Below are positions 8,485-63,728 of a DNA stretch of 64,000 bases, in pieces; positions within the stretch are counted from its first letter, which is position 1; each line of letters opens with the position of its first letter. Position numbers and translations under genes: made by a program. Under the pieces are notes generated by a model. That model ran no database searches. It was not told the DNA's origin and saw only the letters and a list, made by a program, of their open reading frames with translations. This DNA comes from Bugula neritina. Lineage: Eukaryota; Animalia; Bryozoa. The stretch is from positions 35,302,080-35,366,079 of the forward strand of contig OZ037765.1 of NCBI GenBank assembly GCA_964035545.1. The letters are read 5' to 3'.

Positions 8485-8528
<44 letters not shown>

Positions 8529-8550: not shown

Positions 8551-9281
8551 ACTACAAACTTTGAAAATAACTGCAAGAAAGGTATGACTTACTCTTTTTC
8601 TTAGTCTTACTGTGACTCTCAGTCGTAATGTAAAATAAAATTGTGAACTGTAAAGTTAAACCCAAGGCTGAAATTTATTTAATTAAATTTAGACAATCTG
8701 AATCATTGGCTCAATCCTTGAGTTTGACTATTACTATTATTATTACTATTAGTGTTACGATTGTGATTATCATTGGCATTATGCCATTATGATTATCATT
8801 ATGATTGTAATTGTGGTAATTCTTATTCTAACATTAATTATAATCATAAATTAAAAGGTAATGATTAATGATAATTATTTTCATTTTGTAATCATAATGA
8901 TAATCATAATGATGTAAATTTTGATGTAAAACCAAAATACTAAAACTAAAAGTAAAAGTTATAAAATTAAATGATAAAATATTATAATGATAATTATTAT
9001 ATTTATTATATTATTATTGAATATATTATTTCATTAGAAAATAGGTTGCAGCTTAGCATGATTAAAATTCAGTAAAAATTAGTTTACCAACAGCAAACAT
9101 GCATGCGTCTTGTCAACATTCAATTCGTAGTGCCATAGCGAAGCTAGATTACTGGTAGTACGACTACTAGAACTACTACTACTAGTGATGGATTACAGAT
9201 CCTTGGCGATTTTAGCTGTGAGTGACCTTCACCTCACATTCTCGTCATGTGCGCGGCATTAGACTAAGTAGTCGTAGAGGG

Positions 9282-11065
<1,784 letters not shown>

Positions 11066-14899: not shown

Positions 14900-15170
14900 G
14901 CTCTCTCACTCCTCTCTCTGTCTCTTTCTCCCACACCTTCCACTCAACCTCTCTCTCTTTCTCCCCCTCTCTCCCACCCTCCCTCTCTCCCACCCTCCCT
15001 CTCTCCCACCCTCTGTCTCTCCCACCTTCTCTCTCTCCTAACCTTTCTCTCTTCCCTTTTCCACTATCTCTCTGACTCTCTCCCTTTCTCTCTTCTACCC
15101 CATCTCTCTTCCATCCTCTCTCCTAACTTTTCTCTCCCACCCCCCCCTCTCCCACTCTCTTTCTCTCTCT
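14900..15170. repeat. CT-rich polypyrimidine low-complexity tract
   Basis: Directly visible; explains the L/S/P-rich ORFs 14679-15172. Confidence 0.85.
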
Positions 15171-18100
15171 AGTTTGCATGGCTTTACCCAATTTTGGTTT
15201 ATTTTTTTATTTTGTTTCAGAGTATCCAAAAGGAAAGCTAAAATTTATTTAATATATATTATACCAACTTGAGCTTTACATATAATATCAAATAAATGCT
15301 GTGTTTTGTTAAAACAATGTTTGCAACTTTGTAGTATATTCAAATTCATAATTTATTTGTAGAGTCACACAACAAGACACTACTCTGACACACTCACAAG
15401 TTGCCACTGATCCAGCAGTATAGATGATTGTTTTCTCCACTGGCTATGCTGTCAAGCTTTACTGTTGTGGTGTTTGAAACAAACCAATTGTTTGCCTACG
15501 CAGATTAGGGTGAGAAATGAAGGCTGTTTTTAATACCAACTACACTTAGTTTTTATTGAATGAAAAACAAAGTGAAATCATTAGTTATCCGTTAAATGAC
15601 TAAATCATTGTTTATAAAGATGAAACACAAATAATCTTATAATATGCTAATGAAATTTGGCTTTCAAATAGCTTTTTTCTGTATATTTGTTGAGGAAGTT
15701 TATCTTCAACAAAACTTCATAGCTGTTGAATATGTGGAGAGTATTTTATATTGCATAAATTTATAGAGTAAAAGGTTCTCATCAAACTTTTACAACTTAG
15801 CTCATCGACGGTTTAAAAGTGTGAGTCACCCTTCACACTAGAGTTTTATAAAGTTTTAATGAATGTGCAGTATTTTATAAAATATTGTGTGTCTCGTAAA
15901 TTTAGCTATTTCTACCTTTTCAGTGAGATTGGAGTAAACACACCTCAAAATTCACATCTGGTATCACATTGATTTATCGCAAGTCAAAGTACACCTACTA
16001 ACTCTTCCTTCCTTAATACCTGCTTGCTTTTGCACTTCTACTCATTTCATATACCTAACATTTCTCTTGCAGATGAATTACATCTTTTAAGTTGTAAAAG
16101 CCTTAAATAGCATGAAATTAATGAGGTTTAAACCGTGGCCACACTAACTATTGATGCGTTTATTGATGGGTTAAATTACACGAAAATATTGTCTCTTTCT
16201 TTTTAGTTTCAACTAAAGTATTACATACTATTGATGGAGGCTTTGCTGAAGTTTTTGGGTGATGATTTGTCAATAATTTTCCAGAGAAGATGATGCCACG
16301 GTGGCTGGCATCATTATGCAGTTTCCAAGTTTCTTTCGGCTTTGCTCTAGTGAAAATGTTGGAAAACAATCAACAAAAAGGTTTGTACCATAAACAAAGT
16401 TATTGTGTGCGTGTTGTCAAAGCATAAAGTGTGCTGGAAAATTTTAGGTTTCTGTTGAGATGCGTTTTTGCTTTTCCTGCATGAAAAAAGTTCCAGTTTC
16501 AGTTAATATTACTAGCGGAGTGCCCACCTATATTTTAAATCATATTGATGCATAAGTTCTTTTTGTAATATTAAAAGTATAACTTGCTTAATTGCTATTC
16601 AATGCCCTTTGAAGTTTCCAACTGTAATTAATTAGTTGATTTGGCAGCATAGTATCGATGATTGATGAAGGCAGCCGATATAATTATAAGCATAAATATC
16701 TATATCTACATGAAGATGTCATTCCCAATGATTGTTATTCTGAAATCAGCTGATTAAGTTATCACAAACTAAACATTTTGACCAGAGGCTTGCAATGCAA
16801 CTCGGTGAAATTTCAGACCTAGATAAATTGAATTTCTTACTGAAAATCGTGAAGGTATTAAAGTTTAAAGTGAAAGTTTAAAGGGTCATCTCTCTGCGAA
16901 TTCTAATAGCATGGTGCCAATTAGACTTGAAAAAATTTCAAGGCACTACAAAGCACTAAGCCCATTCTTACAAGTAGTTTCAAAGTGCACTGGAATTTCA
17001 GTTTACTTGTCATTGTATAGAATCCTGATCTACACTATATAGCATTCACTATTGCCTGCTTCTTCTAAGCATCTATAATGTATTAACTACAGTTTGCTTT
17101 GAGAAGTGAATTTCTACTTGGTATTTTTTCCTTATCGTTCCATTGTTTGCCAGTAGTCTTAATTTAATGGATTTTCCCTTTTCAAAAGTGGTTGTGACAA
17201 TCAAAACACATCATGCAGCCTGCAACTACACAATCAGTCAGTGATTTCTTCCATTAAAGTAGCTCTTCTGGTTACTCTTGCTCACCTAAAAGCCTGAGCC
17301 TCATTCAAATTGCAATTTTTTAAAGTTGTTAGTTTTTCATGCAGTCTTTCATTTTTTTTGTTAGGCACAAAATTAGTATTCACTAGACCTAATCTTTCAT
17401 CTGCATGTATGCCTATTGTTTGTTCATTAAAGAAAAACCTCTGCTGAATATTGAACTAATAATGAAAATAAATTCCCTAAACTAAAAGTAGCAGTGTGAT
17501 TTTGGTATTACAATTAGTTGTTAGCATAGAGTCAAGTTATTGACAGGAATTTTCAAATTGAAATGAATGAATTTCATTGTAAGTCAGCAAGATTTAGTCT
17601 AAGTAAACATAGCATTACATCTTGTTTTATTTAGCATTTGCAGAAGGCAACATATATTTTAAGGATTATTGTAAACTTAAATGTAATTTTAAGTACTTTC
17701 CATGTTTGTTATTGTAGATGGTCTTGTTCTTTAGGATGGATGTGACAACTCCTTGTGTCAAGCTTAACTGATTGACTACTGAATCCCAATCATATGTTTT
17801 GCCAAAAAATGTGAAAATGGAGTGCATGTCTACTTTATTTGAGAAAATATTAAAAATACTTTTGAAACTTCATCTAGCCAAACAATACAACAGTTTCATT
17901 TTATTAAAAAATATCATTTGCACAAAAATGTATTATGTAATCGAACAATTTCTAGAAAAAAAGTGCTTTCCTCCAGTTTTGCTAATGAACTACATTTTTC
18001 ATTATATGCTTGTCTTTATAATTTTATTAATTGTGTTTTCTGGTGAGTCAATTAAAGTCAATTCAACCTAGAAAAGTCTGAATTTCAGACTTAATTTCAA

Positions 18101-19104
18101 GCTAGAATATTCACATTTTTAGGTCTGCGTTTGCAAACATTGTTGTGTTACTTTACTTTTTATATTTTTTGAAATAAATATCTTTTTAGCTTGTGCCTAT
18201 TCATGATTAGAATAGTATAATAATATTTAACTTTTCTTCAATTTCAATAGATGAAAATGTTGATCAGTTGGAGTATTCAGTTTAGCTGAATTTTACTTGC
18301 TTCTGCGAAAAACAATCTTTTGGAGTTGTCTGCCCTCTCTTTAGGTAATTTTTTGACCTATGGTCAACGCAATAATTATAACTTTTTAAAGATGCTTGTG
18401 AACCTAACAATATAGCATAACTATCAAACCACATTATTCAATATCTGCATAAAATTTTGCCGATAATCTGCCACCCAATGAGCTTGAAAAGATATTAGAA
18501 TTCTAGCTCAGTGCTGCCATCAATGTAGATATTTATAATGATATAAAGCCAAAACTCATTATTTATAATGATATAAAGCCAAAACTCATTATTGCATGAA
18601 ATTATCTAACCATTCCTGACAAAGAATCGAGATAATAACTCCAAAGTTGGTCAGTTGAAACCACAGCAATAATATTTTAATCGTTATAATTGTCAGGTTT
18701 AATTTTATACCAAGCCCCAATAAGTACATATCACTATGACAACACAGCCTAAGCACCTCCAATGCAAGAAATTTAGTATTGTGGTGCTGCAAATCCTCCA
18801 GTTACAAATGAGTAGAGCTTTCATGATTATTGGTCTACCATAATGTTTATTTAGTTTTAAGGACTAGCATACATGCTATTATATGTGGGAGGTATTTGAA
18901 AAGCTTCCAACTCCATCTTCAACTACGGGCTATTATAATTATGCCGATAAACGAGATACTACACTCAGACTGCCCTGTTATAGTACTATGATTGGCTACT
19001 GCAAAATTTTTGCCGATAGACAACATTTAATTATGATGTAATGTATCTCGTATTGGTACATAAGTGTTATGTCTGAGGACGAGATACTGTGAAATTATGC
19101 CCTG

Positions 19105-19138
19105 ATTTTTTCATGCATGAGCTCATGCATGAAAAAAT
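19105..19138. repeat. Perfect 34-bp palindrome
   Basis: ATTTTTTCATGCATGAG|CTCATGCATGAAAAAAT. Confidence 0.9.
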
Positions 19139-19479
19139 GCATAATTTACTAGGAGAAAACTAAATGTGGGTATAAATGAACTTTTTTAAAAATGGTTTCA
19201 TTTCAGGTGATTGTGATGAATCTTATCCCAGTAAAAAGCTGAGACTTTTCTAATGTGATATATATATATAACAAAGTATGTAGGTGCTAAAAATATCAAG
19301 ATCATAGCTATTTGTAAAAGGTGAGTTTTAAGTGCCGGAGAATTGACGATTTTGAAAAATTACCAAATTTTTGGCCTAAAAACGCAATGCAACAGAATAT
19401 TTTTCTCAACACTTATGGCAGATTTTTTGCTTTTAGTTGAATAAAATCATGTAGAACTATCATCCATAAATGTATGAAA

Positions 19480-19709
19480 GGTTTGTATTGAATCGTCTCC
19501 GAGATATAAATCTATGAAGTTGACCTTCGGTACCGAAACCCATGAAAGAAGGACTGATTTTTTTACAAACCTTTGCTCACAAAAAGTGCCATAACTACAA
19601 AACTACCAGGAATTAAGAGCTAATATTTATTATTTTTTCATTTGACATGTTCTAGAATACTCTACTAAAATTTTGGTTTTGGCCTTGTTGAGTTGGCGTG
19701 GAATGACCC
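19480..19709. mobile_element. Probable single terminus of a GGG-ended DNA transposon
   Basis: Ends in ...GTTGGCGTGGAATGACCC (reverse complement GGGTCATTCCACGCCAAC, similar to the GGGTCA terminus at 7268). Homology with the paralogous LRR intron flanks starts immediately after 19709. No partner TIR found in the window. Confidence 0.45.
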
Positions 19710-19806
19710 ATACATCAATAAGAAACTTTATGCTAGAATTACATTTCCTTTTACTCTGATGGTTGTATTACTACATGATGTCTCAACTAGTATATGTTTA
19801 CTATAG

Positions 19807-19947
19807 CATGTCTAATCTGAAGAATCTGGATACTCTTTATATGTCAAAGAATAACTTCAGTGAAGGATTACCTGATGTATTCACATCAATGACATCTCTA
19901 AGAAAGTTGGATATTAGTCACTGTAACCTACCAACTCTACCTGAGAG
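19807..19947 (+). CDS. LRR cassette exon 1 (141 nt, phase 2-2, two LRRs)
   Basis: tatag|C ATG ... GAG AG|gttagt; MSNLKNLDTLYMSKNNFSEGLPDVFTSMTSLRKLDISHCNLPTLPE. Confidence 0.9.
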
Positions 19948-22900
19948 GTTAGTAAAAGCAAGCACCCTCCTAGTGTTTTGCCTCCATGTTTATAGACATG
20001 CATCTCCTGTTGCTATGTATTGTTAAAATTATTACAAATTTCTTATTTTGTATTTAAAGTTAACCAACAATCTAGAATTTACCTGTATGTTTTGAGACTT
20101 ACATTTTTTTTGCTATAAAAAATCTGTGAAAATTTCTCAAATCTGTTGAAAGTTTGCTTATCTGATGTATACAATATGCAAATAAATATAAGCTAATAAA
20201 GAGATGCTATGTAATATTATGACATGTGGTTATATGGAATATATAAGAAATGTTCCAATATTCTAATTTCCTATAATGCTTGAATTAAGTAGAAGCTATA
20301 GTAAGCTGAGTTTATTAGACTTTTCTTGTAAAATAAAAAGCTTGAGCTTTATTATGTAATATCCTGCAGACTAAAATCAGGTTCTGATCTAGCAATATAT
20401 AATGTATAGTTGGTATCTAAATAAGTTATATACAGTCGTTTGTTATACTATAAGCAGTAATAACCTTTAATTGAAATGTTATAAATAATAAATTTGTATT
20501 TTGAAGTATGAAACAAAATTGAAATATTTTAGCAAGTGTCTGTAACTATGACAAATATTATTATATATAAAAATATAAATGCATAAACTGTGAAGGGTAT
20601 ATACTTTGTATTCAGCTTGGTGTTGAAAAAAATAACTCATGGAGTACATTTCACATGTATATGTAATATTTATTTATATCTACTGCAGTAGATATAAATA
20701 AATATTACATATACATGTGAAATACACCTCATGAGTTCTTTTATTTTCAAAACCAAGCTGAATACAAACTCGATACACTTCACATGATGTCTTTTATTCC
20801 AACTTCATACTCCATTGAATGAATTTTATATATCAATAATAAACTTTATGCTAGAATTATATTTCCGTTTACTCTGATGGTTGTATTACTATACATGATG
20901 TCTCAACTAGTATATGTTTACTGTAGCATGTCTAACCTGGAGAATCTGGAGACTCTTGATATGTCATGGAATAACTTCAGTGAAGGATTACCTGATGTAG
21001 TCACATCAATGAAACCTCTAAGCTTGTTGCTTATGTCTCACTGTAACCTACTAACTCTACCTGAGAGGTTAGTAAATGCAAGCACCCTCCTAGTGTTTTG
21101 CCTCCATGTTTATAGACATGCATCTCCTGTTGCTATGTATTGTTAAAATTATTGCAAATTTGTTATTCTGTATTTAAGGTTGACCAACAATCTAGAATTT
21201 ACCTGTATGTCTTCAGACTTACATTTTCTTGTTGCTAACTAATCTGTGAAAATTTTTCAAATCTGTTGAAAGTTTGCTTATCTGATGTATACAATATGCA
21301 AATAAAGAGATGCTATGTAATGTTATGACATGTGGTTATGGAATATATTGTGGTGGTTCGTGGAACTACCAGCAGCACAACATGTAGGGTCGCGTAATTG
21401 ACCCGGAACAATGGATAGCCAATTAGCGTAGTTGATAGTTAGCAGCAATTATAGTTTCCCGCTGTTAAGTCAGTCGAAGCTAGAGTGTGAAATAGATTAG
21501 ATGTGTAACTTGTTTGAATATAATGTATTGTTTTTATAATGTATAATTGTGTGTAAAATATACTCGTTCACTCGACTTATCCTGGTGTAGTTCTATAGCA
21601 AATAAATAGACTCTCTAGATAGCACATCAACCCTAAATCTGAAAATCATAACAGTGGTGGCAGCGCTGGGATAGTGCATCCAAGATGGAGACTGAAAATG
21701 CTGGAACTCAACCACCGGCAATAGAAGGTGAGCGTAGAGACAATGCTGTAGAGACAATGCCTGTTAACCATGTAGTAGAAGAGCGAAGGGTTCCGCGAGA
21801 ACTAGCTGAGGACCGCTACAGGTTAAAGGCGCCCACCTTCACGGGTGAAGAGGAGGTGGAACAATTTATCCAAGAGTTTAGCGACGTAATGGACGTCGCC
21901 CAGTGGCCCCCTAGGGTGGCCTTGCTGAAGCTTAGAATGGCATTGATGGACAAAGCCAAGCCTTATGGGCTGGGCGTAGACATTGATAATATCTTTGCTT
22001 CTCTGCAGGCCCGCTTCGGCCTCTCTGCTACAGATGCCAGGGCCCGATTACAGAGGTTGCGGCGTGATCCCCGCACCCCGCTGCGAGAGCATGCCGCTGC
22101 GGTCATGAAGCTGGCACAGATCGCCTACAGCGACTTGCCCCCAGTCAACCGCGAGAGGTATACCCTCGTTGCTTTCATAGCATCTGTCGACGATCTGGGT
22201 CTCCACCATCAGTTTCTAGCTAGGGGAGTCACCACCGTTGAAGATGCTCTGACTGAGGGGGAAGCTTACCTCCTAGCTAATCAAATGCATAAAAGTCGCG
22301 GAAGCTCCCGTCAAGTGGAGATAGACCGCGCAGACACGGCCGCGGGACAAGGGGAGGAAACCCCCGCCGCGGCTGCCGTGTCCCAGTTGGCGATGGCATC
22401 CAAAGTCACTCAACTGACAGACATGCTAGCCAAGCTGATAGCAACACTGACACCAAAAAAAACCCAGTGAGTACCGCCCCTGAGCCCATGCGGCCATCGG
22501 CGCCGCCACAGGGAGAAACGGTCAGTTTTTGCTGGGAGTGCGGAAATCAAGGGCATTTCCGCCGATATTGTCCCTTCCTAAATCAGGGGTTAAACTACCG
22601 CAGCCCGCAGATGTTCCCACCTCCTGCGGGCCGATGATGAAACTCCCAGGGAAGAAGAAACGCAGGTCACCCAGACGGGTACCGCGTACTGGTAACCAAC
22701 AGTGGCAACAGCCACGACGGACCAGCAAGGGGCTTCGCCCCGCGGCTGCCTTTTCTATGCCCCTTCACAACAGATTCACAGGGCTACGAGTCCAAGAATC
22801 TGGATGGGAGCCCACGAAGGTAGCCGGGGATCTAACCTCGGCACCCCCGAGGCCTACCTACCACCGCCCCAAGAGACCTCCTTCGCGACCCAAAGCGAGG

Positions 22901-25900
22901 GAGGTACTCCCTGCGAGAGTAGGGCCTGAAGAGAGAGTTCAGGTGCAGCCCCATGGGAACAGCTATTTCTTGCCCGGTAAACTAGAAGGCAAAGCTGTTA
23001 CTTTCCTCATTGATTCGGGCTCTACCACAAACCTCTTAAGCCGCCAACTCTTCGACACCCTCAGTGCTAGGGTCAGGGGCGAGATGGAATCATACGAAGG
23101 GGAATACGGCACCCTAGCTGACGGGTCGTGCCATCCCTTCTATGGTATAATTGAGCTGACGGGACGAGTCCGTGATCAAACGATCCAAGAGACGTTCATC
23201 GTCAGTCAGCTCAAGGAGGACGCCATCCTCGGGATGCCAATCCTAAAACGGCACGGATGTCACATAGATTTTAACAAATCTGCAATGATGATGTTCGGGC
23301 GGGAACTCGCCTGCGTCGACAAGTTCGGCCGCCCTTTAGTGGGAGGTGTGCAAGTGGTACGCAACCGTATCATACCAGGCCGCTCCCGGGCTACCATTCA
23401 CTGCGGATCTCTGGACTCGGGGTAGTTGAAGGCGCGCACGAAAAGATCCAACTTGCCAGCAGTCTGAATCAGCTGACTGAGCAAGGGGAGATCTTAGTGC
23501 AATGCGTCAACCCCTTTGCCGAGCCTATCAAGCTCTAGGCTGGGTCGATGCTGGGCCGTTTTCACTTTGTTCAGGAGGAAGACGTAGGCCCGTCGCTGGG
23601 TGATGCGACAGAGGCACTCCCTCAGTGCCCTACTCAAGGGCGAGGGGCAGTCCCCGCACATCTCTGGGAGTTGTATGACACAGCCTGTAGCGGCTGCGCG
23701 AGTAACAGAGAACGCCGAGTTATGGCTAAGTTACTACGCGACTACGGTGATGTGTTCAGCAGCGGAGAGCATGACGTGGGACTGACTGGAATTGTCAGAC
23801 ACGAAATACCGCTGACTGCAGGGACAGTCCCTGTCCGGCAGCCCACACGCAGGCTGGGGCCGGAGAAAGAGAAGGAGGTTAGCCGACAAGTACGGGATCT
23901 TCTAGACCGGGGACTGATAGAGCCCGCCCATAGCGCGTGGAGCTCGCCAGTCGTACTGGTCCAAAAGAAAGAGGGCAGTTGGTGGTTCTGTGTGGATTAC
24001 CGCAAACTCAATAGCGTAACCATACAGGACGCCTACCCTCTACCTCGTATTGACGAGTCATTGGACGCCCTAGCCGGCAGCAAGTACTTCAGTACGTTAG
24101 ACTTGCTAAGCGGCTATTGGCAAGTTCCTCTGAGTCCCGACGCCCAAGAGAAAGCAGCGTTTATCACACGGGACGGTTTGTGGAAGTGGAAGGTGCTGCC
24201 TTTCGGGTTGACCTCCGCCCCAGCCACCTTCCAGAGGCTGATGGAGCAAGTCCTCAGCGGGCTCCATTGGAAGACACTGCTGATCTACCTCGATGATGTC
24301 ATCGTGATCTCCCCAGACTTCGAGAGACATGTCAGTCGTCTGCAGGAGGTCTTTGAGAGACTCCGAGGTGCCGGTCTTAAGCTCAAGCCTTCTAAGTGCG
24401 CTCTATTGCAGCCAGAGGTTAAGTACCTGGGGCACGTTGTCGGTCAAGATGGCGTGGCAACGGATCCCGAGAAGGTAGGGGCAGTAGAAGACTGGGTCAC
24501 CCCCCAAGACTTGACCGGACTCCGGGCTTTCTTGGGGCTGGTAGGGTATTACAGACAATACATACCAGACTTTGCGGGCATAGCACAGCCGTTAAACCGG
24601 CTCACCGCAAAGGGAGTAACGTGGCAGTGGACCCCAGTCGAACAAGAAGCGTTCGACCGCCTCAAGGGCTGCCTACTAACGGCGCCCATCTTTGCCTACC
24701 CAGACCCCACTCTGGAGTACATCCTCGACACGGACGCCAGTGACCAAAATATTGGCGCTGTGCTGTCACAAGTGCAGGAAGGCCGAGAAGTAGTAGTAGC
24801 CTACTACAGCAAGTCTCTCTCACCCATTGAACGAAATTACTGCACTACCCGCAAGGAGCTGCTGGCAGTAATAAAGTCAGTGAAGCACTTCAGACCATAC
24901 CTATATGGCAGGAATTTCCGGCTGCGTACGGATCATGCCTCGCTGATCTGGTTGTGCAAGAGAGCAGAGCCCTCTAGTCAGGTCGCCCGGTGGCTCGAAA
25001 TCCTAGCTGAATTCTCATACCGGATCGAACATCGACCGGGCAAGAGACACAGCAATGCGGATGGGTTGAGTCGCCGACCTGACGGAAGTTGCAAACAGTG
25101 TCTCAACATCGAGAGGAGGGATGGAGGTCCCCCGCGATGCGAGTTGGAGACGCTGGCTCATCACGGAGCACCGTTTGACTGGGACCAAGGTCAACTCAGG
25201 CCAAGAGTTGATGAGTCCCCGGAGGATGTACAAAACCTCCGCGCCAACCCTGTACTGGCCGGTAATGTTCGAGAGCTGAAGAAGCTCCAAGAAGAGCTGC
25301 CTGGAGTCGTGGCAGACATATACCGGGCCAAAAGGGAAGGGCGCAACCCAGCGAGGAACGCATACGACAGGGATGCGCCGAGTTCCGGCTATACTGTCAG
25401 CGTTGGGACTCGCTGCGGATCGGGCAGGATGGGTTACTAACCATCTCTCTAGCTGCCAGCGGCAGACACCCGGAAAGGAAGAGGGTAGTCTGCCCCACGG
25501 CCATCCGCCGTGAGTTGATTTGGGATACCCACAAACAGGCCCACGCAGGGGTCAAGAGAGTGATATCCAAATTATGACTCCGGTGGTATTGGCCACAAAT
25601 GGAGCGTGACGTCCGGCTCAGAGTCAAACAGTGTGAGATCTGCCAGGCCAGTAAGCATAGCCGCCCCCCTGGTGAAGCAGGACGGCGGAGGCTATATGCT
25701 GGTAGGCCCTGGCAAGTAGTCGCTGTAGACCTGGTCGGACCCATGCCCCTGACCCCCAGAGGCAATAATTGGATCCTAGTACTAACCGACCACTTTACTA
25801 GGTGGGCGGATGCTCTGGCTATCCCAGATGCATCAGCCCCAACAGTGGCCAGGGCACTAGACCAACATGTATTCTGTTATTTTGGGCTTCCCGAACAGAT

Positions 25901-28900
25901 ACACTCTGATCAAGGCGCTCAATTCCAGTCTCAACTGATGAGCGACCTTTGCCACCTCTGGGGAGTAAATCAGAGCAGGACCACCCCCTACCACCCTCAA
26001 GGTAACGGGGTGGTGGAGCGCAACAACCGGATGCTAGGTGATGCACTCCGGAGTCTCCTCCTTGGACGAGGTCAAGAGGAATGGGATACGGTGTTGCCGC
26101 AAGTCATGCGTGCATACCGTAGCACCCCACACACCAGTACTGGTGAGACCCCAAACCTCTTGATGCTCGGGAGAGAGACTCGTGTCCCTGACCATCTCAC
26201 CTATCACGTTCCAGAGCAAGACAACTCGGTTCACGAGTATGCCAGTGAACTAGTGGAACGGATGAAGGCCGCACACGATATACTGCGCCAACAGCAGTGG
26301 AAGGTGCGGCACGAAGATTCCGATGAACCACCTCTCTATCAAACGGGAGATAAGGTGTGGATGGTCAATTACGGTAGGCGTCGCGGACAGGCTGATAAAC
26401 TGAAGCCTAAGTTCGTAGGCCCCTACGTGGTCGTCGAGGCTATGCCCAATCATACGTACAAGATCGAGCGCTCAGGACAGGTGTCTATCCAGAATGAGTC
26501 TCGCTTGAAACCGTATTGGGCTAGCCCCGACGGAGTGGGAGAAGCCCCCCCGTTGTAGAGCCCAGGAGGCAGACAACGACGCGCGGGCGACGGCGGCATG
26601 GACCTGAATACGAAGTGGTCATACCGCGGGAAAAAAACTTGGTGAGAGAGGAGCGGCAGCTTTTGTCAACAGAAGCGTGTCCGCCACCGCCAAGTCTAAT
26701 TCCATCACTTCCAGCAACCGAACCGGTTCCGGAAGTGCAAACCCCCACGGAGGGAGGGGCTCCATCCGGAGAACAAGAAGAGGTGACCGCTAACGGTGAA
26801 GTAGAGACGCCATTAGAGGCCCCTACTAACGAACCGGCAAGCGTGTCACCCCCCTAGAAAGGGGACAGCGTACGAGGCAACCCCCCGCATACTTGAAGGA
26901 CTTCATATGCGACTGCGTTAAAAGCGGCGTGTATGAAAGTCTAGGGGAAAACCGTACGAGAAAAGTATCGAGCAAATGTGGGAGTTGTCAACACCACGGA
27001 AATATCAACTTTTGTATCGGCGGAAATAGAAACAAAATTCATCCGCCGGGTGCACAAAGTCTTAATCACGCACCCCAACCACGTTGCTCGATCTTTTCAT
27101 ACGCTGATGCAGTCAGGAGTAGACGTGTTTCTAAGCAGTAGTTCAAACCATTTCACACATTCAGTATGTCTTACAACAACAGATCGTGGGGTGAGTTAAC
27201 TATATCTTAATACGAAACTAGATTGCATCGCTCAGCTCTGACTCACTGAGTCAACCGAGCTGGAGATAGGTTAGTGAAATACCGTAGTAAGAACTCAGTT
27301 TGACTTAGAGATTTTTATAATCTCATTGCAATACGTGTTCTATCTGACTATTCACTACCATAATCTCTACGAGGTAACTGAATTAGGAGTTGCCAAGCTA
27401 TTTAAGCTGACAACACGGCAGTGTACTGTATTAACACTGTTGAAACTTTTTCAGATTACACTCGACCCGCTACAACCAGGGTACGGGATAGAACACTTCC
27501 CGCTCCGCATCCGGAGGAGTATGCTAGTGGTGACCGGCCTGAGCCACTACGCCGCCGTTGGCGGTGGGTGTCTCCACAAACAGAGGAAGAAATAGAAACG
27601 GCCTGGGGGTCCAGAGGACGGACGAGATGCCAGATCTGTGGTGAAGATTGCGCCTCTCACCGCTCCCTTAAACTACACGTCAATGCTCATCTCCTACTAA
27701 CATTCTGCCCCTGCGGGTACAATGATGTGTATCTCTACCCCGTCACCAGACACCGAGCGACGGGCTGTTTCCCTGGAGAAAACTACGTGGTCGACGCTAA
27801 GCTATACCCGGAGTTCCTCACACTTATACGACCTCTGGTGAAGAAGGCCATGCTGTTAGCCGTTCTGTCCTCGGGATTCCAACGTGTGTTAGACAACGCC
27901 CGCCAACAATCCCCGTTGGTGTCTGACCGCCCTCAAATTACATACACCCCCGAGGAAATTACATATACAGAAGAAGGAGAGATCTCCCCTACCCCGACGA
28001 AGAGACGAACCAGGTCCCCCAGTCCACCCTTGCGCCGCAGACGGACACCGTCCCCAGACCCAGTCCGCCTAGCCACAGCAGAAGAACGCCTCCTGCGATT
28101 ACAAGAAGAATTCACCCAGCTGGCACCAGATCTACTTAACACTACAACAGGACTCTTCCAGCTAAAGGGATCCGTATGCCGTATGAAACGGAAACTGCGT
28201 ACATGCCAAGCCAAGCACCGGCGTGCCCAACAAGGACTCTAGTTAGACTACCCGGAGTACTCCAACTTCGCCTCTTGGGGGAAACCAAGATGTCATGTAA
28301 ACGTTTGACTGCTTAACAGGTTATCCCCTGTCTAACACCACAGCTAGCTAGTATTCCTCGTCTATCTACAGCTGGCCAATTGTATGCAACGGATCGTTAT
28401 AATGACTCTGTCTATTATTATGTCTCTTCCTGTATATTATGTGTTATTTTTGTCCACTGATGTATGCGGTTACTAATGAATGTTTTTTTTATATATATAT
28501 CAGAAAGATGGCTTTCTGCTGGTGGGGGCGGTGTGGTGGTTCGTGGAACTACCAGCAGCACAACATGTAGGATCGCGTAATTGACCCGGAACAATGGATA
28601 GCCAATTAGCGTAGTTGATAGTTAGCAGCAATTATAGTTTCCCGCTGTTAAGTCAGTCGAAGCTAGAGTGTGAAATAGATTAGATGTGTAACTTGTTTGA
28701 ATATAATGTATCGTTTTTATAATGTATAATTGTGTGTAAAATATACTCGTTCACTCGACTTATCCTGGTGTAGTTCTATAGCAAATAAATAGACTCTCTG
28801 GATAGCACATCAACCCTAAATCTGAAAATCATAACAATATAAGACATGTTCCAATATTTTAATTTCGTATAATGCTTGAATTAAGTAGAAGTTATAATAG

Positions 28901-31900
28901 TAAGCTGAGTTTAGTAGACTTTTTGTGGAAAATAAAAAGCTTGAGCTTTATTATGTAATATCCTGCAGACTAAAATCAGGTTCTGATCTAGCAATATATA
29001 ATGTATAGTTGGTATCTAAATAAGTTATATACAGTCGTTTGTTATACTATAAGCAGTAATAACCTTTAATTGAAATGTTATAAATAATAAATTTGTATTT
29101 TGAAGTATGAAACAAAAATGAAATATTTTAGCAATTGTCTGTAACTATGACAAATATTATTATATATAAAAATATAAATGCATAAACTGTGAAGGGTATA
29201 TACTTTGTATTCAGCTTGGTTTTGAAATGAAGGACTCATGCAGTATATTTCACATGTATATGTGAGATTCGTATCTACTGATGTCTTCTATTCCAACTTC
29301 ATACTCCATTAAATGAAATTTATTATATATCAATGGGAAACTTTATGCTAGAATTATATTTCCTTTTACTCTGATGGTTGTATTACTACATGATGTCTCA
29401 ACTAGTATATGTTTACTATAGCATGTCTAATCTGAAGAATCTGGAGACTCTTGATGTGTCAGAGAATAACTTCAGTAAAGGATTACCTAATGTAATCACA
29501 TCAATGACATCTCTAAGAGAGTTGAATATTACAGAATGTGAACTACCAACTCTACGTGAGAGGTTAGTGAAACCAACTTCATCTGAAATGTTCATTCAGT
29601 AATTTCAAAGAATTATTGAATTATATAATTCAATAATTAGACATACAACTATAATAATAAATACAATTTGCTTTTAGTTTTACAAATACATTTCATTGAA
29701 TTCAAAATATGTTTTTATACTTATTATATTATATTATATTTAATTGCATCAATTATTTTGTTTTATTATAATATTTTATTGCATCGTATCTCAATTATTA
29801 TATTATATGTTTGTTATATGTTTACTGATGTCTTCTATTCCAACTTCATATTCCATAAAATGAAATTTATCATATATCAATAGGAAACTTTATGCTAGAA
29901 TTATATTTCTATTGCTTTAGATGGTTGTATTACTACATGATGTCTCAACTAGTATATGTTTACTATAGCATGTCTAATCTGAAGAATCTGGAGACTCTTT
30001 ATATGTCAGTGAATAACTTCAATGAAGGATTACCTGATTTAGTCACATCAATGACATCTCTAAGGAAGTTGGATATTAGAAACTGTAAACTACCAACTCT
30101 ACCTGAGAGGTTAGTGAAAGTAACTTCATATGATATGTTTATCTAGTAACTCCAAAAGGTATTTTTGACTTCTATAATTTTGATCAGGCATCTATGATTA
30201 TAATAGCGGATGAAATGTGTTTGTATATAGTTTTACTTCATACAATCATCTTTCTTTGTAAGTTTGAGTGCTTTTTTATCTAGTGTGTTACATATTATTA
30301 TATTACACTGTATTATACTATTTTATACTACACTATATTGCATTACATTATATTATAATTATATATATTATGTTATATTATAATATAATATTAGAGTATA
30401 ATTATCTTCACTATCATATATGCTGACTCTAGCATTTCTATAGTACATTGTATTATATATTATATTGTAATATAATCAATTACACTATACTATATTATTT
30501 CAATACGATGTAATATAATATATTACTATTAAATTTTATACTGTATTATAATATATTTTACTGTATAATGGTACACTATACTATAATATATTATAACTCA
30601 ACTAGTATATGTTTACTATAGAATGTCTAATCTGAAGAATCTGGAGACTCTTGATATGTCAAAGAATAACTTCAGTAAAGGATTACCTGATGTAGTCACA
30701 TCAATGACATCTCTAAGAGAGTTGAATATTAGTCACTGTAACCTACCAACTCTACCTGATAGGTTAGTAAAACTAATTTTATATGAAATTTTCATTCAGT
30801 AATTTCAAAGAATAATTGAATTATATAATTCAATAATTAGACACACAACTATAATAATAAATATATTTTATTCAATTCAAAATATGTTATTATATTTAAT
30901 ATATTATATTATATTTAATTACATCAAATATTTTATTTCATTATAATATTTTATTATATTGCATCGTATCTCAACTAGTATTTTATGTGTTTACTGTAGC
31001 ATGTCTAATCTGAAGAATCTGAAGACTCTTGATATGTCAGGGAATAACTTCAGTGAAGGATTACCTGATGTAGTCACATCAATGGCATCTCTAAGAGAGT
31101 TGAATATAGAGACCTGTGAACTACCAACTCTACCTGAGAGGTTAGTAAATGCAAGCACCCTCCTAGTATTTTGCTTCCATGTTTATAGACATGCATCTCC
31201 TGTTGCTATGTACTGTTCAAATTATTACAAATTTCTTATTCCATATTTAATGTTAACCAAAAAGATCCTAAACAATGTTTTAACTCAAAAGAAATATCAC
31301 GTTATATATGCTACTCTTTTAACTTATTCCATAAAAAGCTGCATATATCCTGTTACATGATGTCTCAATCAGTATATGTTATAATATATATATTCATATA
31401 TTACATATGATGTCTCAACTAGTATATGTTTACTACAGCATGTCTAATCTGAAAAATCTGGATACTCTTAATATGTCAGGGAATAACTTCAGTGAATGTG
31501 AAGGATGCAGGATGTAGGATGTAGTTCTGCATTAGAAGTACTTATCCTACATTCCCCTCCCTTCAAACGACATCACAATTACTATAAGACACCAAATTAT
31601 CATAAGCAAATTCTATGGATTAAAATACTAATATACATATAATTATCATTAATGCAGTTATATGTCACAAGGAAACCTCATCTCCATGCTTTTTAGAGAG
31701 AAAACAGTTGCATTAAGGGCAGAATTCATCAAGTTGTATTTTATTGCATGTAACACCTAAGGATTTATCTATCACAACAGCTGTATACAGATGTAATTCT
31801 TTAACTGACAAATTTGAGAAAATTTTCTCATTCTAAATCTACAAACATGTTTACAAACTAATAGATATATCAAATTAATATAGGCTAATTATATGCAGCC

Positions 31901-34900
31901 TTTAATCAGATGAAATACTAAAATGTAAAATTATTATTATTATTATTATTGTTATTATTATTATTGTTGTTATTTTAACATGATGCGAAAAAACTTGGTC
32001 TTTATTTTTTTTCAAATAAAATAGTTGGGTTTAATTTATTAAATTATATTTTGTAATATTTTGTTGTATTTAGTTTACTTCCAAGTGGCGCAGGAGCACT
32101 TCTATAGTAAAACAGTTATTAGGAGTTGTCATTTCTTAAATGACGTGTTTAAGAAAAGTTGCCTGTGATAAGTATGCAGACATTTCGCAAATTCATAACA
32201 GTCTGAATAAGTGTTGAGTTGAGGTTGTAAGACTTTTCTAAACATTTTCAAAAGCTGTAACCAGAAGGAGTATATTTGCTGAATTCTGACTTATAATAAT
32301 ATATGTTTTATCTTAATTGCAGTTTGAAGTATTTGGAGAATCTGGAAGATCTGTATATTCAGAATAACAACTTTACTACAATTCCAGAGGCTGTCTGCAA
32401 CTTGAAGAAATTACAAGTGATACAGGTTGATGGATGCAAGTCTTTAACCACTCCCCCTTATGAAGTCTGCACCAGAGGATTGCCAGCAATCAGACAGTAT
32501 TACAGAGATCTTGCTAAAGGTGAAGGTGAAAGTCTCCCACTAGTCACCATTGCAGTGATTGGTAACACAATGGCAGGGAAGACAAGTCTCATCAGAACAT
32601 TGCAGAGTGAAGAGAGAAAGAGAGTGCTGACAAATCGTGGACCTGAGGCTGCCGTTGATGAAACAACTAAAGTCTTTAAAGTTGAAGAGTTGAAAGTGCA
32701 CAACACGCTTCTGAGACTAATTGACCTGGGAGGACAACCAGTGTACCACATGACGTACCAGCTTACACTTAAACAGAACTGCATCCCAATAGTAGTGGTG
32801 AACATGGAGCAGTATCATCAGCTGGCAGAAAAGAAGGGAAACAGAGAGGCTGTGAAAAGACTGGCTTTTGATTGGCTGGCTCATTTGTACGTGGCAAACC
32901 CTGGCATTGGACCACCAAAACTTGTGTTTACTCACAAAGACAAGTTTGATGAGGATAATTTCACAAAGATGACTACTGCTTTTACCAGCACAGCTGATCT
33001 ACTGAAAGATGAAATTATCAGAGAAGAGAAAAAACTTGACCAAAGCATAGCAAAGATAGAGCACTTCCATCAACACAGAGAGCTGTTCTCGCAAGAAGAT
33101 ATCTACTCAGTTGGAAAAGAAGATAATTATCAAACATACGAAGTCATGAAAACTGCCATTTTCAGGTCAGCTCAAAATTTTGTGAAAGTGTTGCCAAAGC
33201 TATGGGAAGATGTGAATGAGAAAGTCTTGGGATTACAGACAGCATTCAGTACACTTGATGAGATAATTGATACAGTGCTGCAAGTAGATGAAACCATCAC
33301 ATCTGATCAGCTTGCCATAATCCTCATCTACATGCATGATTGTGGTAAAGTCTTGTGGTACAAGGATATCCAGGAGTTGAACCAAATTATTTTTCACAAG
33401 ATTGAGGAAGTAACTAAATTACTCACAGTCTTGTTTCATCACGATGAAGATGTGTGGCAGACACGGCAAGCAAATTTTGAACCACCTCTTCTGACTAACG
33501 GAGCTTTTCTTGAGAAAGAACAGTTTGAGAATTCCATGGAGATTTTCTTGTCAACAGGAATCATGGAGAGCCAACTTCTAGAATATTTAATCAAAGCTGA
33601 GACAGCATTCTCCGATGAAAATGCACATCAACTTGCTGCTACTTTGCTGCAGAAATTCAGCATTCTGTACGGACCAGTTGATCGAGATTCAAAAAGCTGT
33701 TTCATTGTTCCCTTCTACTCCCCTGATTACCTAGAGAACACTCTCACTACTGATCAAGACATCATTCTCCATGCTGAGATCATGTTCAAAGGTCTCTCAA
33801 TCCCACAATATGTCTACCAACAGATGAGTGTTGTTGTCCTACGAATGTTCCCAGATGAGACAAGTGCTCCCCTCGTTACAAAAAATGGTGTAAAGGTTTT
33901 TCACAATGATGTCTCGGTGCGCCTTGTCCATGATGGCCTATCAAGGAAGGCAGATGTTACAGTGTCTGGAGCAGCAGAGAAAATCACAGATTGTTGGAAG
34001 CACATGGTCAGCATAACCAGGAAAATATCCAATGAGATCTACAGTTCATGGCCTGCCAGCAGAATGGTCCACAAGTCTAGTTGTACACACTGCATATTGA
34101 AAGGTGAATCCAGTCCTAAGGTTCAGGTAACTCCCAAATGGTGTGTCGACTTTCAAACGGAGACACCTTATGAGCAGTTCCAGAAGGAGATAGTGACAGT
34201 TCTTTGTAGAGGAGATAAGATCCTAAGCCCATTCATGCACCCATGTAAGTTAAGTTGGTGCGATAAAATAGTTCTGTAAGTTGAGAACTTAAAATATCTA
34301 AGTGTAGATAATATGTTGAATTTTGTTGGCAATCTTAGCTAGCTAAATTATGCATTTAAAATTTTTAAATAAATCAGGGTAACTAAAAGTATTTATGTTT
34401 TATGGGCTTTGTCTATTTATGATAATTATTGTTTATAAAATTGGGTGCAGCAACTTTTTTTGTTAACAAGAGAAGAATTGTTTATCATTCACTAATAAAA
34501 CTTGAAGTTTAATTGTAGGCAAGCCTTTCACTAAGTCTAAACTAAAGGAACTGAAGGCAATGCTGAAAAAGTTAAAGATGCAGCAGAAGCATTGGAAGAA
34601 AGAGACAGATGAATCAGGTATACTATACACTCAAGACTGAAGTGTCCTGCAGTTGTGTCTCCCTGAAGATCTAGAAAGGAAGTGATGTATTAAACAGACA
34701 GATAAAGTGTAATATGTTACAGAGACAAGCAAGCCCACACTCACTATATCTATAGCTCCTCTCCTACGACCAGCAGTACAGCAGACTGTGACAGACGGAG
34801 AGAGTGACCTCTCTGATGATGATGACTACATGGAACCTGCTGATGACCCTGACAGACAACTGGTATCTCTCAGACAGGCAGTTCTACCAACTACTAGGAA

Positions 34901-37177
34901 GGGCATTCGGAGATTATTCTACAACACAGATAAAGTGTGACATCACAATATCTTCTCAATAATACTTTGGTTATCTTATATGGCTACGGCTCTACACTAA
35001 CAATTAACACACATTTTATAAACCTTGACAAATATTGATTATGTATTTAGGTTAAAATTTTTCGGCTATTTATATGATTAAAAAAAGTGGCTTTTAGAAT
35101 GAATATACATGTTTAGAAAATCACATAGAGCACCATCTCTCTGCACAATTATGCCGGAACTATGCTAAAGTTTTCTCAGATTAGGAAGTTATAATACACT
35201 AGCTGTTTGATAGTTTGAAACACTGTTCCTATTATATAGGCCAGTTTAACTGACTTAAAACTTTCTATGTGTCTGTTCCATTTTAATTTTATTGTTTAAT
35301 CACAAAAACATTTCAACTATCCAAAGGTTTTACAAGACCAAACAAGTAGATCAAGTGTTTATATAATTAAGATTCAATGATTACTGACTGCAGGTGTTTC
35401 TAATGACAAAGAACAGAGGAAGAGCTCTGATAATCAACAACAGAGAATTTTCCAATTGCCAGGAAAGACTTGGCTCTGATGCTGACGTTAGAAATCTTGA
35501 AGAAATGTTAGAAACATTCAAATTTGCCACCAAGGTTTTTGAGGAAATCAGCGCTGAGGTAACAGGATATCTGTAAATTATAGAGACTAAATTGAGTGAT
35601 GATTAAAATGTCGATGGTGAATTTTTCGAAGAGTAGGAGAAAAATCATAGGATGAATTATTTTTGCATATTTTTTACAAGTCAACAGTTTTATGTGACCC
35701 AATTCTAAGATGCATCAAGTTACATAAATTCACTGCATACTTGAAATAATGGTGAACTTAAAGTTAACTGCAGTTCCAACTAGCAGAGAGAATTAAATAT
35801 GTTTATAGGACATGTTGCATGTGATAAAGAATGAGGTTGAAAACAGACATCATGCTGAGTCTGGAGTATTCTGGTTGGCTATTCTAAGTCATGGAACTGA
35901 GGCTAATCACATCTATGGCTCTGATGGTGTTCTGGTTAACCTAAAGGATGTCTATGATCTTCTTTCACCAATAAACTTTCCTCTAATGGCTGAGAAGCCA
36001 AAGATAGTCGTGATTCAGGCCTGTAGTGGAAGTGAGTATCACATAATATCTATATAACTATTTGCCTCTATAGAACCTTATTACTACAATGAGCTCATCT
36101 GAAGACTTTTGGGTAAATCAGAAAAGTGTAACTATATTCAGTACTGTTCATCTCCAATACGTTTGCTAGATAGAGTAGATGGAGGCGGGAAAGGAATATT
36201 TCCAGCCAATCAGAATGATAATACAGTTACTGACCAACATTTGGTAGTCAAAGCTGTCAGATCAGCAGCTGGAGAACCTTTGGGAGGAGACAGATTAGAG
36301 AAACTCAACTGTGACAATCTGTTAATATTAAAGTCCAGCTTTGAATGTAAGTAAATAGCATATTCTTTCTCTAAACATGACAAAATTAGTTCTGCATATA
36401 ACAATAAGCAAATAATTTATTTGTACAGTTTTCTAAAAAAGAAATGAATCCAGACTCTACCAGATTCAGGGAATTTAGAAAATGAATAGAATATTTGAAA
36501 GTGGAAGAATCAAATAATATTATGACTTTACAAAATATTGGCAGTCTCGAAATTACTTTGTCTTTTAGTCCCGCATTTAGTTCATAGCCAAATAATAGCT
36601 ACATAACATTTTATGCTGAAAAGACATTTTCCCTACATTTCCTAATATTATATTTTTAAGATTTGTGTTGCAGCATATGTGTCTAGACGTCACCCTGTTT
36701 ATGGATCTCTAGCAATTAGATGTCTGGTCCAAACTATGTACAGGCACGCATGCCACAGACATGTCTATAAAATATTTAGGATTGTAAGTATATATATCAG
36801 AGAAAAACAGCATGTATTGGTATTTGCATATGTGAACATACATCCGATAAACTTAATTTAATTGCTTGGCTGTCACCAATTCTTATGTTTATCTGCAGGT
36901 ACAGCACAGGGTGAGAGAGTTTTGCATTCAGAGAAACCTTGAGAATGGTCAGACAGTCATTGCTATAAATACTCTGACACACATGAGAAAACTCTACCTG
37001 TTTCCTGGATACAATGGCTTTACAAGGAACTCTGAACGATCAAGTAACATGAGACAACAAGTAGAGAGAGAAGTAGAATCAAGTAGCCTCAAGCAACCAG
37101 CAGAAAGAGAAGCAGAGGCAAGTAGCAACACACAACAGCTTGTAGAGAGAGGACCAGAAACAAAAGTTAAACAGTAA
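19807..37177 (+). CDS. LRR-ROC-COR-caspase fusion protein (ROCO family with C-terminal caspase). 14 visible coding exons; 5' end uncertain
   Basis: Exons 19807-19947, 20927-21067, 29422-29562, 29969-30109, 30622-30762, 31000-31140, 32323-34244, 34519-34617, 34723-34934, 35394-35558, 35809-36031, 36170-36346, 36674-36783, 36899-37177. All are AG/GT-bounded with matching phases. 4032 nt from ATG 19808 to TAA 37177 = 1343 aa, with no internal stop by my reading. Confidence 0.88.
20927..21067 (+). CDS. LRR cassette exon 2
   Basis: tgtag|C ATG ... AG|gttagt; MSNLENLETLDMSWNNFSEGLPDVVTSMKPLSLLLMSHCNLLTLPE. Confidence 0.9.
21349..21653 (+). repeat. 5' LTR
   Basis: TGTGGTGG...CATAACA, 305 bp; AATAAA at 21601. 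Confidence 0.95.
21655..21672 (+). promoter_or_regulatory. Primer-binding site, tRNA-Leu type
   Basis: TGGTGGCAGCGCTGGGAT, 1 nt after the LTR. One mismatch to the complement of the tRNA-Leu(AAG/TAG) 3' end (TGGTGGCAGCGGTGGGAT). Confidence 0.8.
21685..22637 (+). CDS. gag: Gypsy gag; CCHC knuckle lies in the -1 frame after an A8 run
   Basis: ORF 21685-22470 has capsid-like motifs (PTFTG...EQFIQEF...W). The -1 frame after the A-run at 22455-22462 encodes CWECGNQGHFRRYC and ends at TGA 22635-22637. Confidence 0.8.
22529..26558 (+). pseudogene. pol: Gypsy pol (protease, RT, RNase H, integrase), disrupted
   Basis: Protease LIDSGS; RT YLDD and LPFGL; RNase H DTDAS...KELLA; integrase HHCC and D..D..E (VDLVGP, HSDQG, VERNNR) with GPY. 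Frame breaks near 23405 and 25345; in-frame stops TAG 23536 and TGA 25575. Confidence 0.93.
27421..28242 (+). CDS. Extra ORF3 of the Gypsy element: C2H2 plus C2HC zinc fingers, R/S/P-rich linker, coiled coil
   Basis: CQIC-x12-HVNAH and CPC-x12-H-x4-C; RRTRSPSPPLRRRRTPSP; heptad-like C-terminus. The ORF has no ATG start; there is a candidate acceptor ttttcag at 27448-27454. Confidence 0.7.
   Translation: MYCINTVETFSDYTRPATTRVRDRTLPAPHPEEYASGDRPEPLRRRWRWVSPQTEEEIETAWGSRGRTRCQICGEDCASHRSLKLHVNAHLLLTFCPCGYNDVYLYPVTRHRATGCFPGENYVVDAKLYPEFLTLIRPLVKKAMLLAVLSSGFQRVLDNARQQSPLVSDRPQITYTPEEITYTEEGEISPTPTKRRTRSPSPPLRRRRTPSPDPVRLATAEERLLRLQEEFTQLAPDLLNTTTGLFQLKGSVCRMKRKLRTCQAKHRRAQQGL
28521..28531 (+). 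promoter_or_regulatory. Polypurine tract
   Basis: GGTGGGGGCGG directly before the 3' LTR. Confidence 0.7.
28532..28836 (+). repeat. 3' LTR
   Basis: 305 bp; 302/305 identical to the 5' LTR by eye. Confidence 0.95.
29422..29562 (+). CDS. LRR cassette exon 3
   Basis: MSNLKNLETLDVSENNFSKGLPNVITSMTSLRELNITECELPTLRE; same splice sites and phase. Confidence 0.9.
29969..30109 (+). CDS. LRR cassette exon 4
   Basis: MSNLKNLETLYMSVNNFNEGLPDLVTSMTSLRKLDIRNCKLPTLPE; same splice sites and phase. Confidence 0.9.
30622..30762 (+). CDS. LRR cassette exon 5 (absent from the ORF track)
   Basis: tatag|A ATG ... GAT AG|gttagt; MSNLKNLETLDMSKNNFSKGLPDVVTSMTSLRELNISHCNLPTLPD. Confidence 0.9.
31000..31140 (+). 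CDS. LRR cassette exon 6
   Basis: MSNLKNLKTLDMSGNNFSEGLPDVVTSMASLRELNIETCELPTLPE; same splice sites and phase. Confidence 0.9.
31439..31517 (+). pseudogene. Truncated seventh LRR cassette (pseudo-exon)
   Basis: Intact acceptor tacag|C ATG, then MSNLKNLDTLNMSGNNFSE. Homology then breaks, giving CEGCRM* (TAG 31515-31517). Confidence 0.8.
32323..34244 (+). CDS. Large exon: terminal LRRs, LRR cap, ROC GTPase and COR
   Basis: ttgcag|T TTG (phase 2, compatible with the cassettes). LRRs LENLEDLYIQNNNF and LKKLQVIQVDGC; cap PPYEVC..G..AIRQY; P-loop VIGNTMAGKTSL; G3 DLGGQ..Y; G4 VFTHKD; COR motifs PKLW, YMHDCGKVLWY, FIVPF; late CTHC. Donor T|gtaagt. Confidence 0.93.
34519..34934 (+). CDS. Two linker exons (34519-34617, 34723-34934): basic helix then acidic linker
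   Basis: CKPFTKSKLKELKAMLKKLKMQQKHWKKETDES / ETSKPTLTISIAPLLRPAVQQTVTDGESDLSDDDDYMEPADDPDRQLVSLRQAVLPTTRKGIRRLFYNTDK. Phases 1-1 and 1-0 bridge COR to the caspase in frame. Confidence 0.75.
35394..37177 (+). CDS. Caspase (peptidase C14A) domain, five exons
   Basis: RGRALIINNREF...ERLGSDADVRNL; catalytic His in ILSHG; KPKIVVIQACSG (catalytic Cys); small subunit YVSRRHPVYGS...NTL...KLYLFPG. Confidence 0.93.

Positions 37178-41950: not shown

Positions 41951-63728
<21,778 letters not shown>

Follow-up and report, generated by a model that had tools for sequence, protein, structure and literature searches.

We describe here a gene in a 64,000-nucleotide stretch of the genome of the bryozoan Bugula neritina (assembly GCA_964035545.1, contig OZ037765.1, positions 35,302,080 to 35,366,079 of the forward strand), referred to below as the window and numbered from its first nucleotide. 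The DNA of the window is AT-rich and of animal type, containing introns, tandem repeats and transposons, and on its plus strand, at 19807-37177, lie 14 exons whose product would join leucine-rich repeats (LRRs), a Roc GTPase, a COR domain, a linker and a caspase in a single polypeptide. We consider it probable that this is one gene of a bryozoan family whose products are cytosolic, single-chain LRR-Roc-COR-linker-caspase receptors, activated by COR dimerisation and killing the cell. Characterised animal initiator caspases are activated via death-fold adaptors on platforms; if our model is true, a caspase wired to a Roc-COR switch is an adaptor-free route that stands apart from the apoptosome, the death-inducing signalling complex (DISC) and the inflammasome. 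It would also offer, through its protease, a read-out for a question still debated for LRRK2, namely whether the GTP-bound monomer or the GDP-bound or empty dimer is the active Roco state. Furthermore, bryozoan immunity is close to unstudied.

Exon chain and domain order

The 14 exons sum to 4032 nt, or 1343 codons, with a single stop, the terminal TAA at 37177; all 13 introns are GT-AG and the exon phases agree throughout the chain. An earlier sequence-only reading of the window had proposed 14 exons in frame encoding about 14 LRRs, a ROC GTPase with intact G1/G3/G4 motifs, a COR domain, an acidic linker and a complete caspase, with no CARD, DED, DD or kinase, and these elements stood up to analysis, with the refinement that a helix exon precedes the acidic one. 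Database searches were queried with single exons or homologs. Each of the first six exons is a 141-nt, phase 2-2 cassette with two LRRs: exon 1 (19807-19947, with an AG acceptor at its start and ATG as its first full codon), exon 2 (20927-21067, whose second repeat is the most diverged), exon 3 (29422-29562), exon 4 (29969-30109), exon 5 (30622-30762) and exon 6 (31000-31140). Exon 7 (32323-34244, 1922 nt) contributes the last two LRRs and their cap, followed by Roc, COR-A, COR-B and a C-terminal CxHC...C element. This gives 14 LxxLxLxxN/C repeats in all; a count by regular expression missed one degenerate repeat and made one false match inside Roc.

The Roc domain of exon 7 scores above the Pfam cut-off (E 1e-6) and its motifs are all present: the G1 P-loop GNTMAGKT (32561-32584), the G2 threonine, which is invariant in 67 aligned sequences, G3 DLGG and G4 THKD. 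Roc is directly followed by COR, as is characteristic of ROCO proteins; the COR-A match (E 6e-4) is below the cut-off, and for the AlphaFold model of exon 7 (predicted local distance difference test, pLDDT, 89.8) the best fold matches across the whole tandem are C. tepidum Roco 6HLU, LRRK1, 3DPU and LRRK2. Against its closest paralog, Roc-COR has a ratio of nonsynonymous to synonymous rates (dN/dS) of 0.24, indicating purifying selection. The kinase that follows COR in LRRK and Dictyostelium Roco proteins is replaced by a caspase, and the nucleotide-binding module is a Roc GTPase, not the NACHT or NB-ARC ATPase that marks the NLR/STAND class. Two further observations concern the switch. At the end of exon 7 (34078-34244), a CxHC motif and a Cys after it vary little or not at all across Roc-COR relatives from bryozoans, amphioxus and elsewhere, and form a possible zinc site capping COR-B just ahead of the effector. 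In one Watersipora member (P0053, XP_067948342.1) the P-loop and G4 are degenerate and the caspase is intact, a possible pseudo-GTPase version.

Between COR and caspase, exon 8 (34519-34617, phase 1-1) encodes a short amphipathic helix with counterparts in paralogs and in Watersipora, and exon 9 (34723-34934, phase 1-0) the acidic linker, ending in a conserved pre-caspase segment; the exon 9 donor at 34935 (GTGTGA) is weak and its position is kept in paralogs. In bryozoan members this linker is about 100 residues long, and in the AlphaFold model of a Watersipora homolog it comprises one helix and then disorder, tying a folded Roc-COR to a folded caspase. A hidden death-fold domain in the linker was considered and rejected, with no Pfam match in bryozoan members and none in the homolog model. 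Within exon 9 lies the motif S-D-[LVI]-S-D (SDLSD here, 34803-34817), which is kept across both genera in the otherwise variable linker sequence of Bugula and Watersipora members. SDLSD fits a DxxD caspase site, yet the acidic residue that follows disfavours cleavage, and we take it to fit an acidic-kinase phosphorylation site as well; the motif is therefore a regulatory candidate, a putative site of self-cleavage or of phosphorylation by an acidic kinase.

The caspase occupies the last five exons: exon 10 (35394-35558) starts the large subunit and holds the first Asp-pocket arginine (RLGS), exon 11 (35809-36031) carries the catalytic SHG (35887-35895) and QACSG (36016-36030), exon 12 (36170-36346) encodes the inter-subunit linker and the start of the small subunit, exon 13 (36674-36783) continues the small subunit with the second Asp-pocket arginine (SRRHPVYGS), and exon 14 (36899-37177) adds the last caspase strand (LYLFP), a low-complexity tail of ~50 residues and the stop. 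Exons 10, 11 and 13 match Peptidase_C14 (PF00656). Aligned to homologs and to caspase-3, the domain keeps SHG, QACSG and both arginines (RLGS; SRRH..GS), that is, the catalytic His and Cys and the Asp-specificity pocket (two Arg and the Gln of QACSG) that define metazoan caspases (C14A). By these residues the caspase is intact and predicted to cleave after Asp, and nearly all full-length family members retain the catalytic His and Cys. The CARD or DED prodomain of the classical initiator caspases-2, -8, -9 and -10 is absent, and no conserved inter-subunit cleavage site was found in an inter-subunit linker that is variable. The caspase of the Watersipora homolog model resembles caspase-3, -9 and -1 (template-modelling, TM, score ~0.8 by target). 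With similar scores to the caspase-3, -8, -9 and CED-3 structures, the caspase encoded in the window is no clear ortholog of a characterised class. The caspase tree was built without stand-alone caspases, and for that reason the donor class cannot be read from it.

Two introns hold features of their own. Intron 1 contains a 120-nt near-perfect palindrome with 60-nt arms and no spacer (20626-20745). Intron 2 contains a 7.5-kb Gypsy-type long terminal repeat (LTR) retrotransposon (21349-28836) on the same strand as the host gene, with a 4-bp target-site duplication and with gag-like, protease, reverse transcriptase-RNase H and integrase parts in separate reading frames. Its 305-bp LTRs (21349-21653 and 28532-28836) are 99% identical, and the insertion is taken to be recent because they differ at only 3 of 305 nt. 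After the integrase there is an extra frame of 278 codons (27406-28239) with a C2H2-like motif and no Pfam match.

A probable single gene, its family and its putative sensor surface

The LRR-Roc-COR exons and the caspase exons are most likely one gene. Among named relatives of exon 7, the closest belong to two cheilostome bryozoans, Bugula neritina and Watersipora subatra, and the nearest relative outside these named ones, on a JGI contig (P0151), is 80% identical. In three paralogs from a Bugula-labelled sample, L002, L006 and L008 (Roc-COR identity 80%, 59% and 45%; L002 is the closest paralog referred to above), the same chain recurs, with a phase-1 COR donor, a helix exon, an acidic exon and a phase-0 caspase acceptor, all GT-AG and stop-free; Watersipora XP_067947674.1 shows it too, and in a fourth paralog, L007, caspase exons likewise lie downstream. 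Roc-COR and caspase are joined in one chain in at least nine Watersipora RefSeq proteins and in Bugula KAF6039231.1 and KAF6024315.1. The ~25 JGI clusters that are 42-80% identical, counted irrespective of source, point to a large family.

RNA evidence comes from one run (X1, taken as RNA), in which exon bins are covered and intron bins have zero or near-zero depth. In one X1 contig of 1327 nt, ~95% alike, exons 9 and 11 are both present and stand 163 letters apart (exon 10 has 165 nt), and in a paralog transcript a joint at 31144>32330 ties an LRR exon, corresponding to exon 6, to exon 7. Most X1 contigs are 85-99% alike and thus represent paralog transcripts; 28 are at least 99% alike. With the exon chain conserved among paralogs and in a second bryozoan genus, and with spliced paralog RNA contigs, the single-chain architecture put forward in the sequence-only reading is upheld.

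The cassettes are where this family varies. Their DNA identity is 83-95%, flanking intron sequence has been duplicated along with them, and they are too alike for RNA contigs to be assigned to single ones. When the six are compared, with substitutions tallied by a minimum count favouring synonymous paths, the ten concave-face positions show 23 nonsynonymous changes in 24.3 sites, as against 17 in 82.6 sites at non-concave positions (p ~2e-6) and 5 changes in 31.1 sites for all synonymous sites of the cassettes. The concave-face nonsynonymous rate is 5.9 times the synonymous one (p ~4e-5), showing the LRR concave face to be under diversifying selection. A seventh, truncated cassette at 31439-31497 (plus strand) keeps its acceptor, lacks a donor and soon reaches a stop; we rejected it as a coding exon, and for these same reasons it must be skipped if the full protein is to be made. 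It is a remnant of a process of cassette duplication and loss that is still going on. In paralog L008 four 144-nt LRR cassettes (5088-7683) form a separate array; their consensus is a different one, but the exposed sites that vary are the same, and each gene thus seems to expand a unit of its own. The gene shows the pattern known from brown algae, symmetric LRR exons whose exposed positions are under diversifying selection. The earlier suggestion that this is a receptor gains from the diversifying LRR face, the large paralog family and the intact caspase together.

Proposed mechanism and its rivals

Initiator caspases activate upon dimerisation. Caspase domains have also been activated by forced dimerisation (cited in PMC2575513), and C. 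tepidum Roco, in which dimers form via the C-terminal part (half) of COR, is found mainly as a monomer when GTP is bound, as a dimer in the absence of nucleotide and in between when GDP is bound; Roco proteins may be GTP sensors (PMC6337361). In the mechanism we propose, the resting receptor would be a GTP-loaded monomer, or one in which two caspases are held apart. Binding of a pathogen or damage ligand to the LRR face, or a drop in cellular GTP, would shift Roc to the GDP-bound or empty state, in which we predict activation by analogy with C. tepidum Roco. COR-B would then dimerise as it does in that protein, and the flexible linker would allow two caspase domains to pair in the fashion of initiator caspases, no death-fold adaptor being required. 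The active dimer would cut after Asp, possibly at its own S-D-[LVI]-S-D linker motif, freeing the protease, and downstream caspases or gasdermin-like substrates would be cut, leading to cell death. Specificity would be varied by duplication and diversification of the symmetric LRR exon cassettes within each paralog. As C. tepidum Roco is monomeric with GTP and dimeric without nucleotide, a mutation in the P-loop may raise activity instead of abolishing it.

Several points weigh against this model. First of all, GTP binding, dimerisation, protease activity and ligand stand at the level of prediction. Second, COR is weak by sequence, below the Pfam cut-off and 12-15% identical to solved Roco proteins, and because of this weak match its dimer interface may differ from theirs. 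Third, the six exons compared in the selection test are close relatives offering few synonymous sites, and its result could be biased by gene conversion. Fourth, neither 34244>34519 nor 34617>34723 is among the X1 joints listed, and expression of this copy is unproven because the former joint is absent among those listed and the X1 contigs are mostly paralogs. Fifth, exon 1 opens at a splice acceptor, leaving the 5' end open, and no 5' or further LRR exon was found in 1-19800 by tblastn of 19 full-length homologs or with an LRR hidden Markov model. Finally, transcripts of the gene may be cut short by the LTR element, which lies in sense orientation in intron 2.

The alternative that survives best, and which we still regard as unlikely, accepts the fusion and denies the killing: the caspase would signal through cytokine-like or NF-kB substrates, or serve allorecognition between colonies or the turnover of zooids (brown-body formation), in place of defence against pathogens. 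The chemistry of activation could be unchanged in that case. LRR diversification suits any fast-changing ligand, non-self colony tissue and symbionts included, the caspase is of no clearly characterised class, and the RNA sample comes from a symbiont study, not from an infection. Many paralogs with hypervariable LRR faces, on the other hand, are the pattern of pathogen receptors, as in NLRs and brown-algal ROCOs (PMC11378527), and related chassis bear typical conflict effectors. Somewhat less likely again is that the family is real and this copy crippled or altered, the LTR element ending transcripts early or its 3' LTR starting them, so that a form with four cassette exons or no product at all would result. 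Each LRR exon begins with an in-frame ATG from which a shortened form could start, the insertion is recent, the truncated cassette at 31439 lies in the same array, no 5' exon was found in 1-19800, and the X1 contigs at 85-99% are paralogs. Set against this, however, are 1343 codons free of stop and frameshift, 13 of 13 canonical introns, purifying selection on Roc-COR against the closest paralog and the 28 X1 contigs that are at least 99% alike. Two adjacent genes, an MFHAS1-like LRR-Roc-COR ending at a TAA at 34279 and a separately initiated caspase, are highly improbable: the exon 7 frame does reach that stop 35 nt beyond the donor, AATAAA occurs at 34368 and 34494, exons 8-10 hold in-frame Met codons and some Watersipora models end short of the caspase, but the junction exons and their phases are kept in three paralogs, whose protein identity is 44-80%, and in Watersipora, NCBI models from two genera fuse both parts, and AATAAA is common in AT-rich introns.

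Related receptors, origin and the rest of the window

The sequence-only reading had not recognised this architecture among characterised animal ROCO proteins or caspases. It is indeed uncharacterised in the literature searched, where we found no paper on the bryozoan family, on an animal Roc-COR-caspase as such or on a functional test of any Roc-COR-caspase, most subscription journals being outside that coverage; it is not, however, unseen, for Branchiostoma species have it and bacterial versions are published. The LRR-Roc-COR-caspase order is present in 13 database proteins (one a fragment) from B. floridae, B. belcheri, B. lanceolatum and hybrids, examples being BRAFLDRAFT_67388, _80701, _75631 and XP_035697785.1. 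Zhang et al. (2008) described amphioxus 'LRRs-caspase' genes with intact QACXG and proposed a shortcut from recognition to apoptosis, with no mention of Roc-COR (PMC2575513). These are probably the Branchiostoma LRR-Roc-COR-caspases with the GTPase unrecognised, a correspondence for which the model identifiers could not be matched. The present gene belongs with the LRR-Roc-COR-effector receptors, its effector being a metazoan caspase and its LRRs lying in exon cassettes, and the architecture is not confined to bryozoans.

The amphioxus forms share the domain order and an intact caspase, and their caspase intron positions look similar. They differ in that XP_035697785.1 has LRR, Roc and COR in one exon and no LRR cassette exons, in that their linker is 22-42 residues long and lacks the S-D-x-S-D motif, as against ~100 residues in bryozoans, and in reading QACRG where bryozoans have QACSG, with 21-24% identity. 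In Roc-COR trees the bryozoans form one clade on a long stem (Shimodaira-Hasegawa-like approximate likelihood-ratio test, SH-aLRT, 100), and the Roc-COR of the amphioxus caspase forms groups not with this clade but intermingled with amphioxus OTU and GT4 forms and a Death-domain form. The approximately unbiased (AU) test rejects a grouping of bryozoan with amphioxus caspase forms (p 0.00025), partly since the latter mix with other effectors, and marginally rejects bryozoans with the whole amphioxus clade (p 0.043); these were quick LG+G4 trees with no mixture model and many unnamed outgroup rows. The trees thus suggest, weakly, that the bryozoan fusion was separate from the amphioxus one. Differences in linkers and gene structure favour separate fusions, long branches keep the reading tentative and the similar caspase intron positions run counter to it. 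A broader claim, plausible in our view though short of probable, is that a large adaptor-free death-receptor family arose in cheilostome bryozoans, separately from those of amphioxus and bacteria, in which Roc-COR would directly dimerise a fused caspase and recognition would be diversified by LRR-exon shuffling and possibly alternative splicing.

In other animals the same chassis bears Death, CARD, OTU, GT4 or TIR effectors. In five Branchiostoma proteins (P0091, P0105, P0110, P0209 and P0212) and one further protein (P0108) near-identical LRR-Roc-COR switches carry swapped or stacked effectors: OTU, OTU+GT4, GT4, Death, caspase+GT4 and caspase+Death+GT4. Outside animals, Kaur et al. (2021) described bacterial LRR-AP-GTPase(Roc)-COR proteins with at least 24 C-terminal effectors, a caspase included (PMC8195603, Fig. 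6D). These bacterial conflict proteins resemble the bryozoan family in their fast-evolving N-terminal LRRs, Roc-COR core, variable C-terminal effector and many paralogs per genome, but they are known from prediction only, carry caspase-like peptidases in place of a metazoan Asp-specific caspase and have no exon cassettes (PMC8195603). That bacteria, amphioxus and bryozoans all have this layout, probably through separate fusions, points to Roc-COR as an immune switch of general use, which in animals would run alongside the STAND ATPases. Brown-algal LRR-ROCO proteins, an expanded family with shuffled LRR exons and diversifying selection, have been proposed as immune receptors (Zambounis 2012, PMC3341825; Teng 2024, PMC11378527); they too place LRRs on separate exons, yet each of those exons encodes a single LRR and a C-terminal effector is lacking, whereas in the bryozoan gene each cassette encodes two LRRs and a caspase follows.

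MFHAS1/MASL1 and other kinase-less animal ROCO proteins share the LRR-Roc-COR core, RefSeq calls bryozoan members 'MFHAS1 homolog', and MFHAS1-type clusters are the nearest named ones by language-model features (scores <0.9, a lead only). To our knowledge MFHAS1 has no caspase, and the bryozoan Roc-CORs sit in a long-branch clade of their own, to which a Lingula MFHAS1-like protein does not belong. In NLR inflammasomes and the Apaf-1 apoptosome, a repeat sensor and a nucleotide switch lead to proximity-induced caspase activation. The bryozoan gene shares this logic, but with a Roc GTPase in place of a STAND ATPase, a dimer expected instead of a ring, the caspase fused, and no CARD, DED, DD or PYD.

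Two caspase fusions that came up as candidate family members were rejected, as they lack Roc-COR. One (P0215, L009:217-2967) is an intronless contig with a 916-aa frame combining a pannexin/LRRC8-like channel domain, LRRs and an intact caspase, another adaptor-free fusion; the other (P0192, a Logan contig) is a 1028-aa ankyrin-repeat protein with an intact caspase at its end.

Elsewhere in the window, dispersed repeats common to L002 and L006 lie upstream of exon 1 (7496-7688, 9346-9680 and 10653-10987), the copies at 9346 and 10653 being inverted about a TA-rich tract in a manner resembling a miniature inverted-repeat transposable element (MITE). Fragments at 4141-6392 resemble, by eye, a non-LTR retrotransposon reverse transcriptase; one piece was scanned and gave no Pfam match. 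Downstream, on the plus strand, a multi-exon gene with many MAM domains spans 42083-63725 (Pfam matches at 50732, 53711 and 63351), with a Thr-rich stretch near 54728-55096 and introns full of minisatellites, and at 55092-58168 there are 64 copies of a 48-nt minisatellite unit, giving long open frames.

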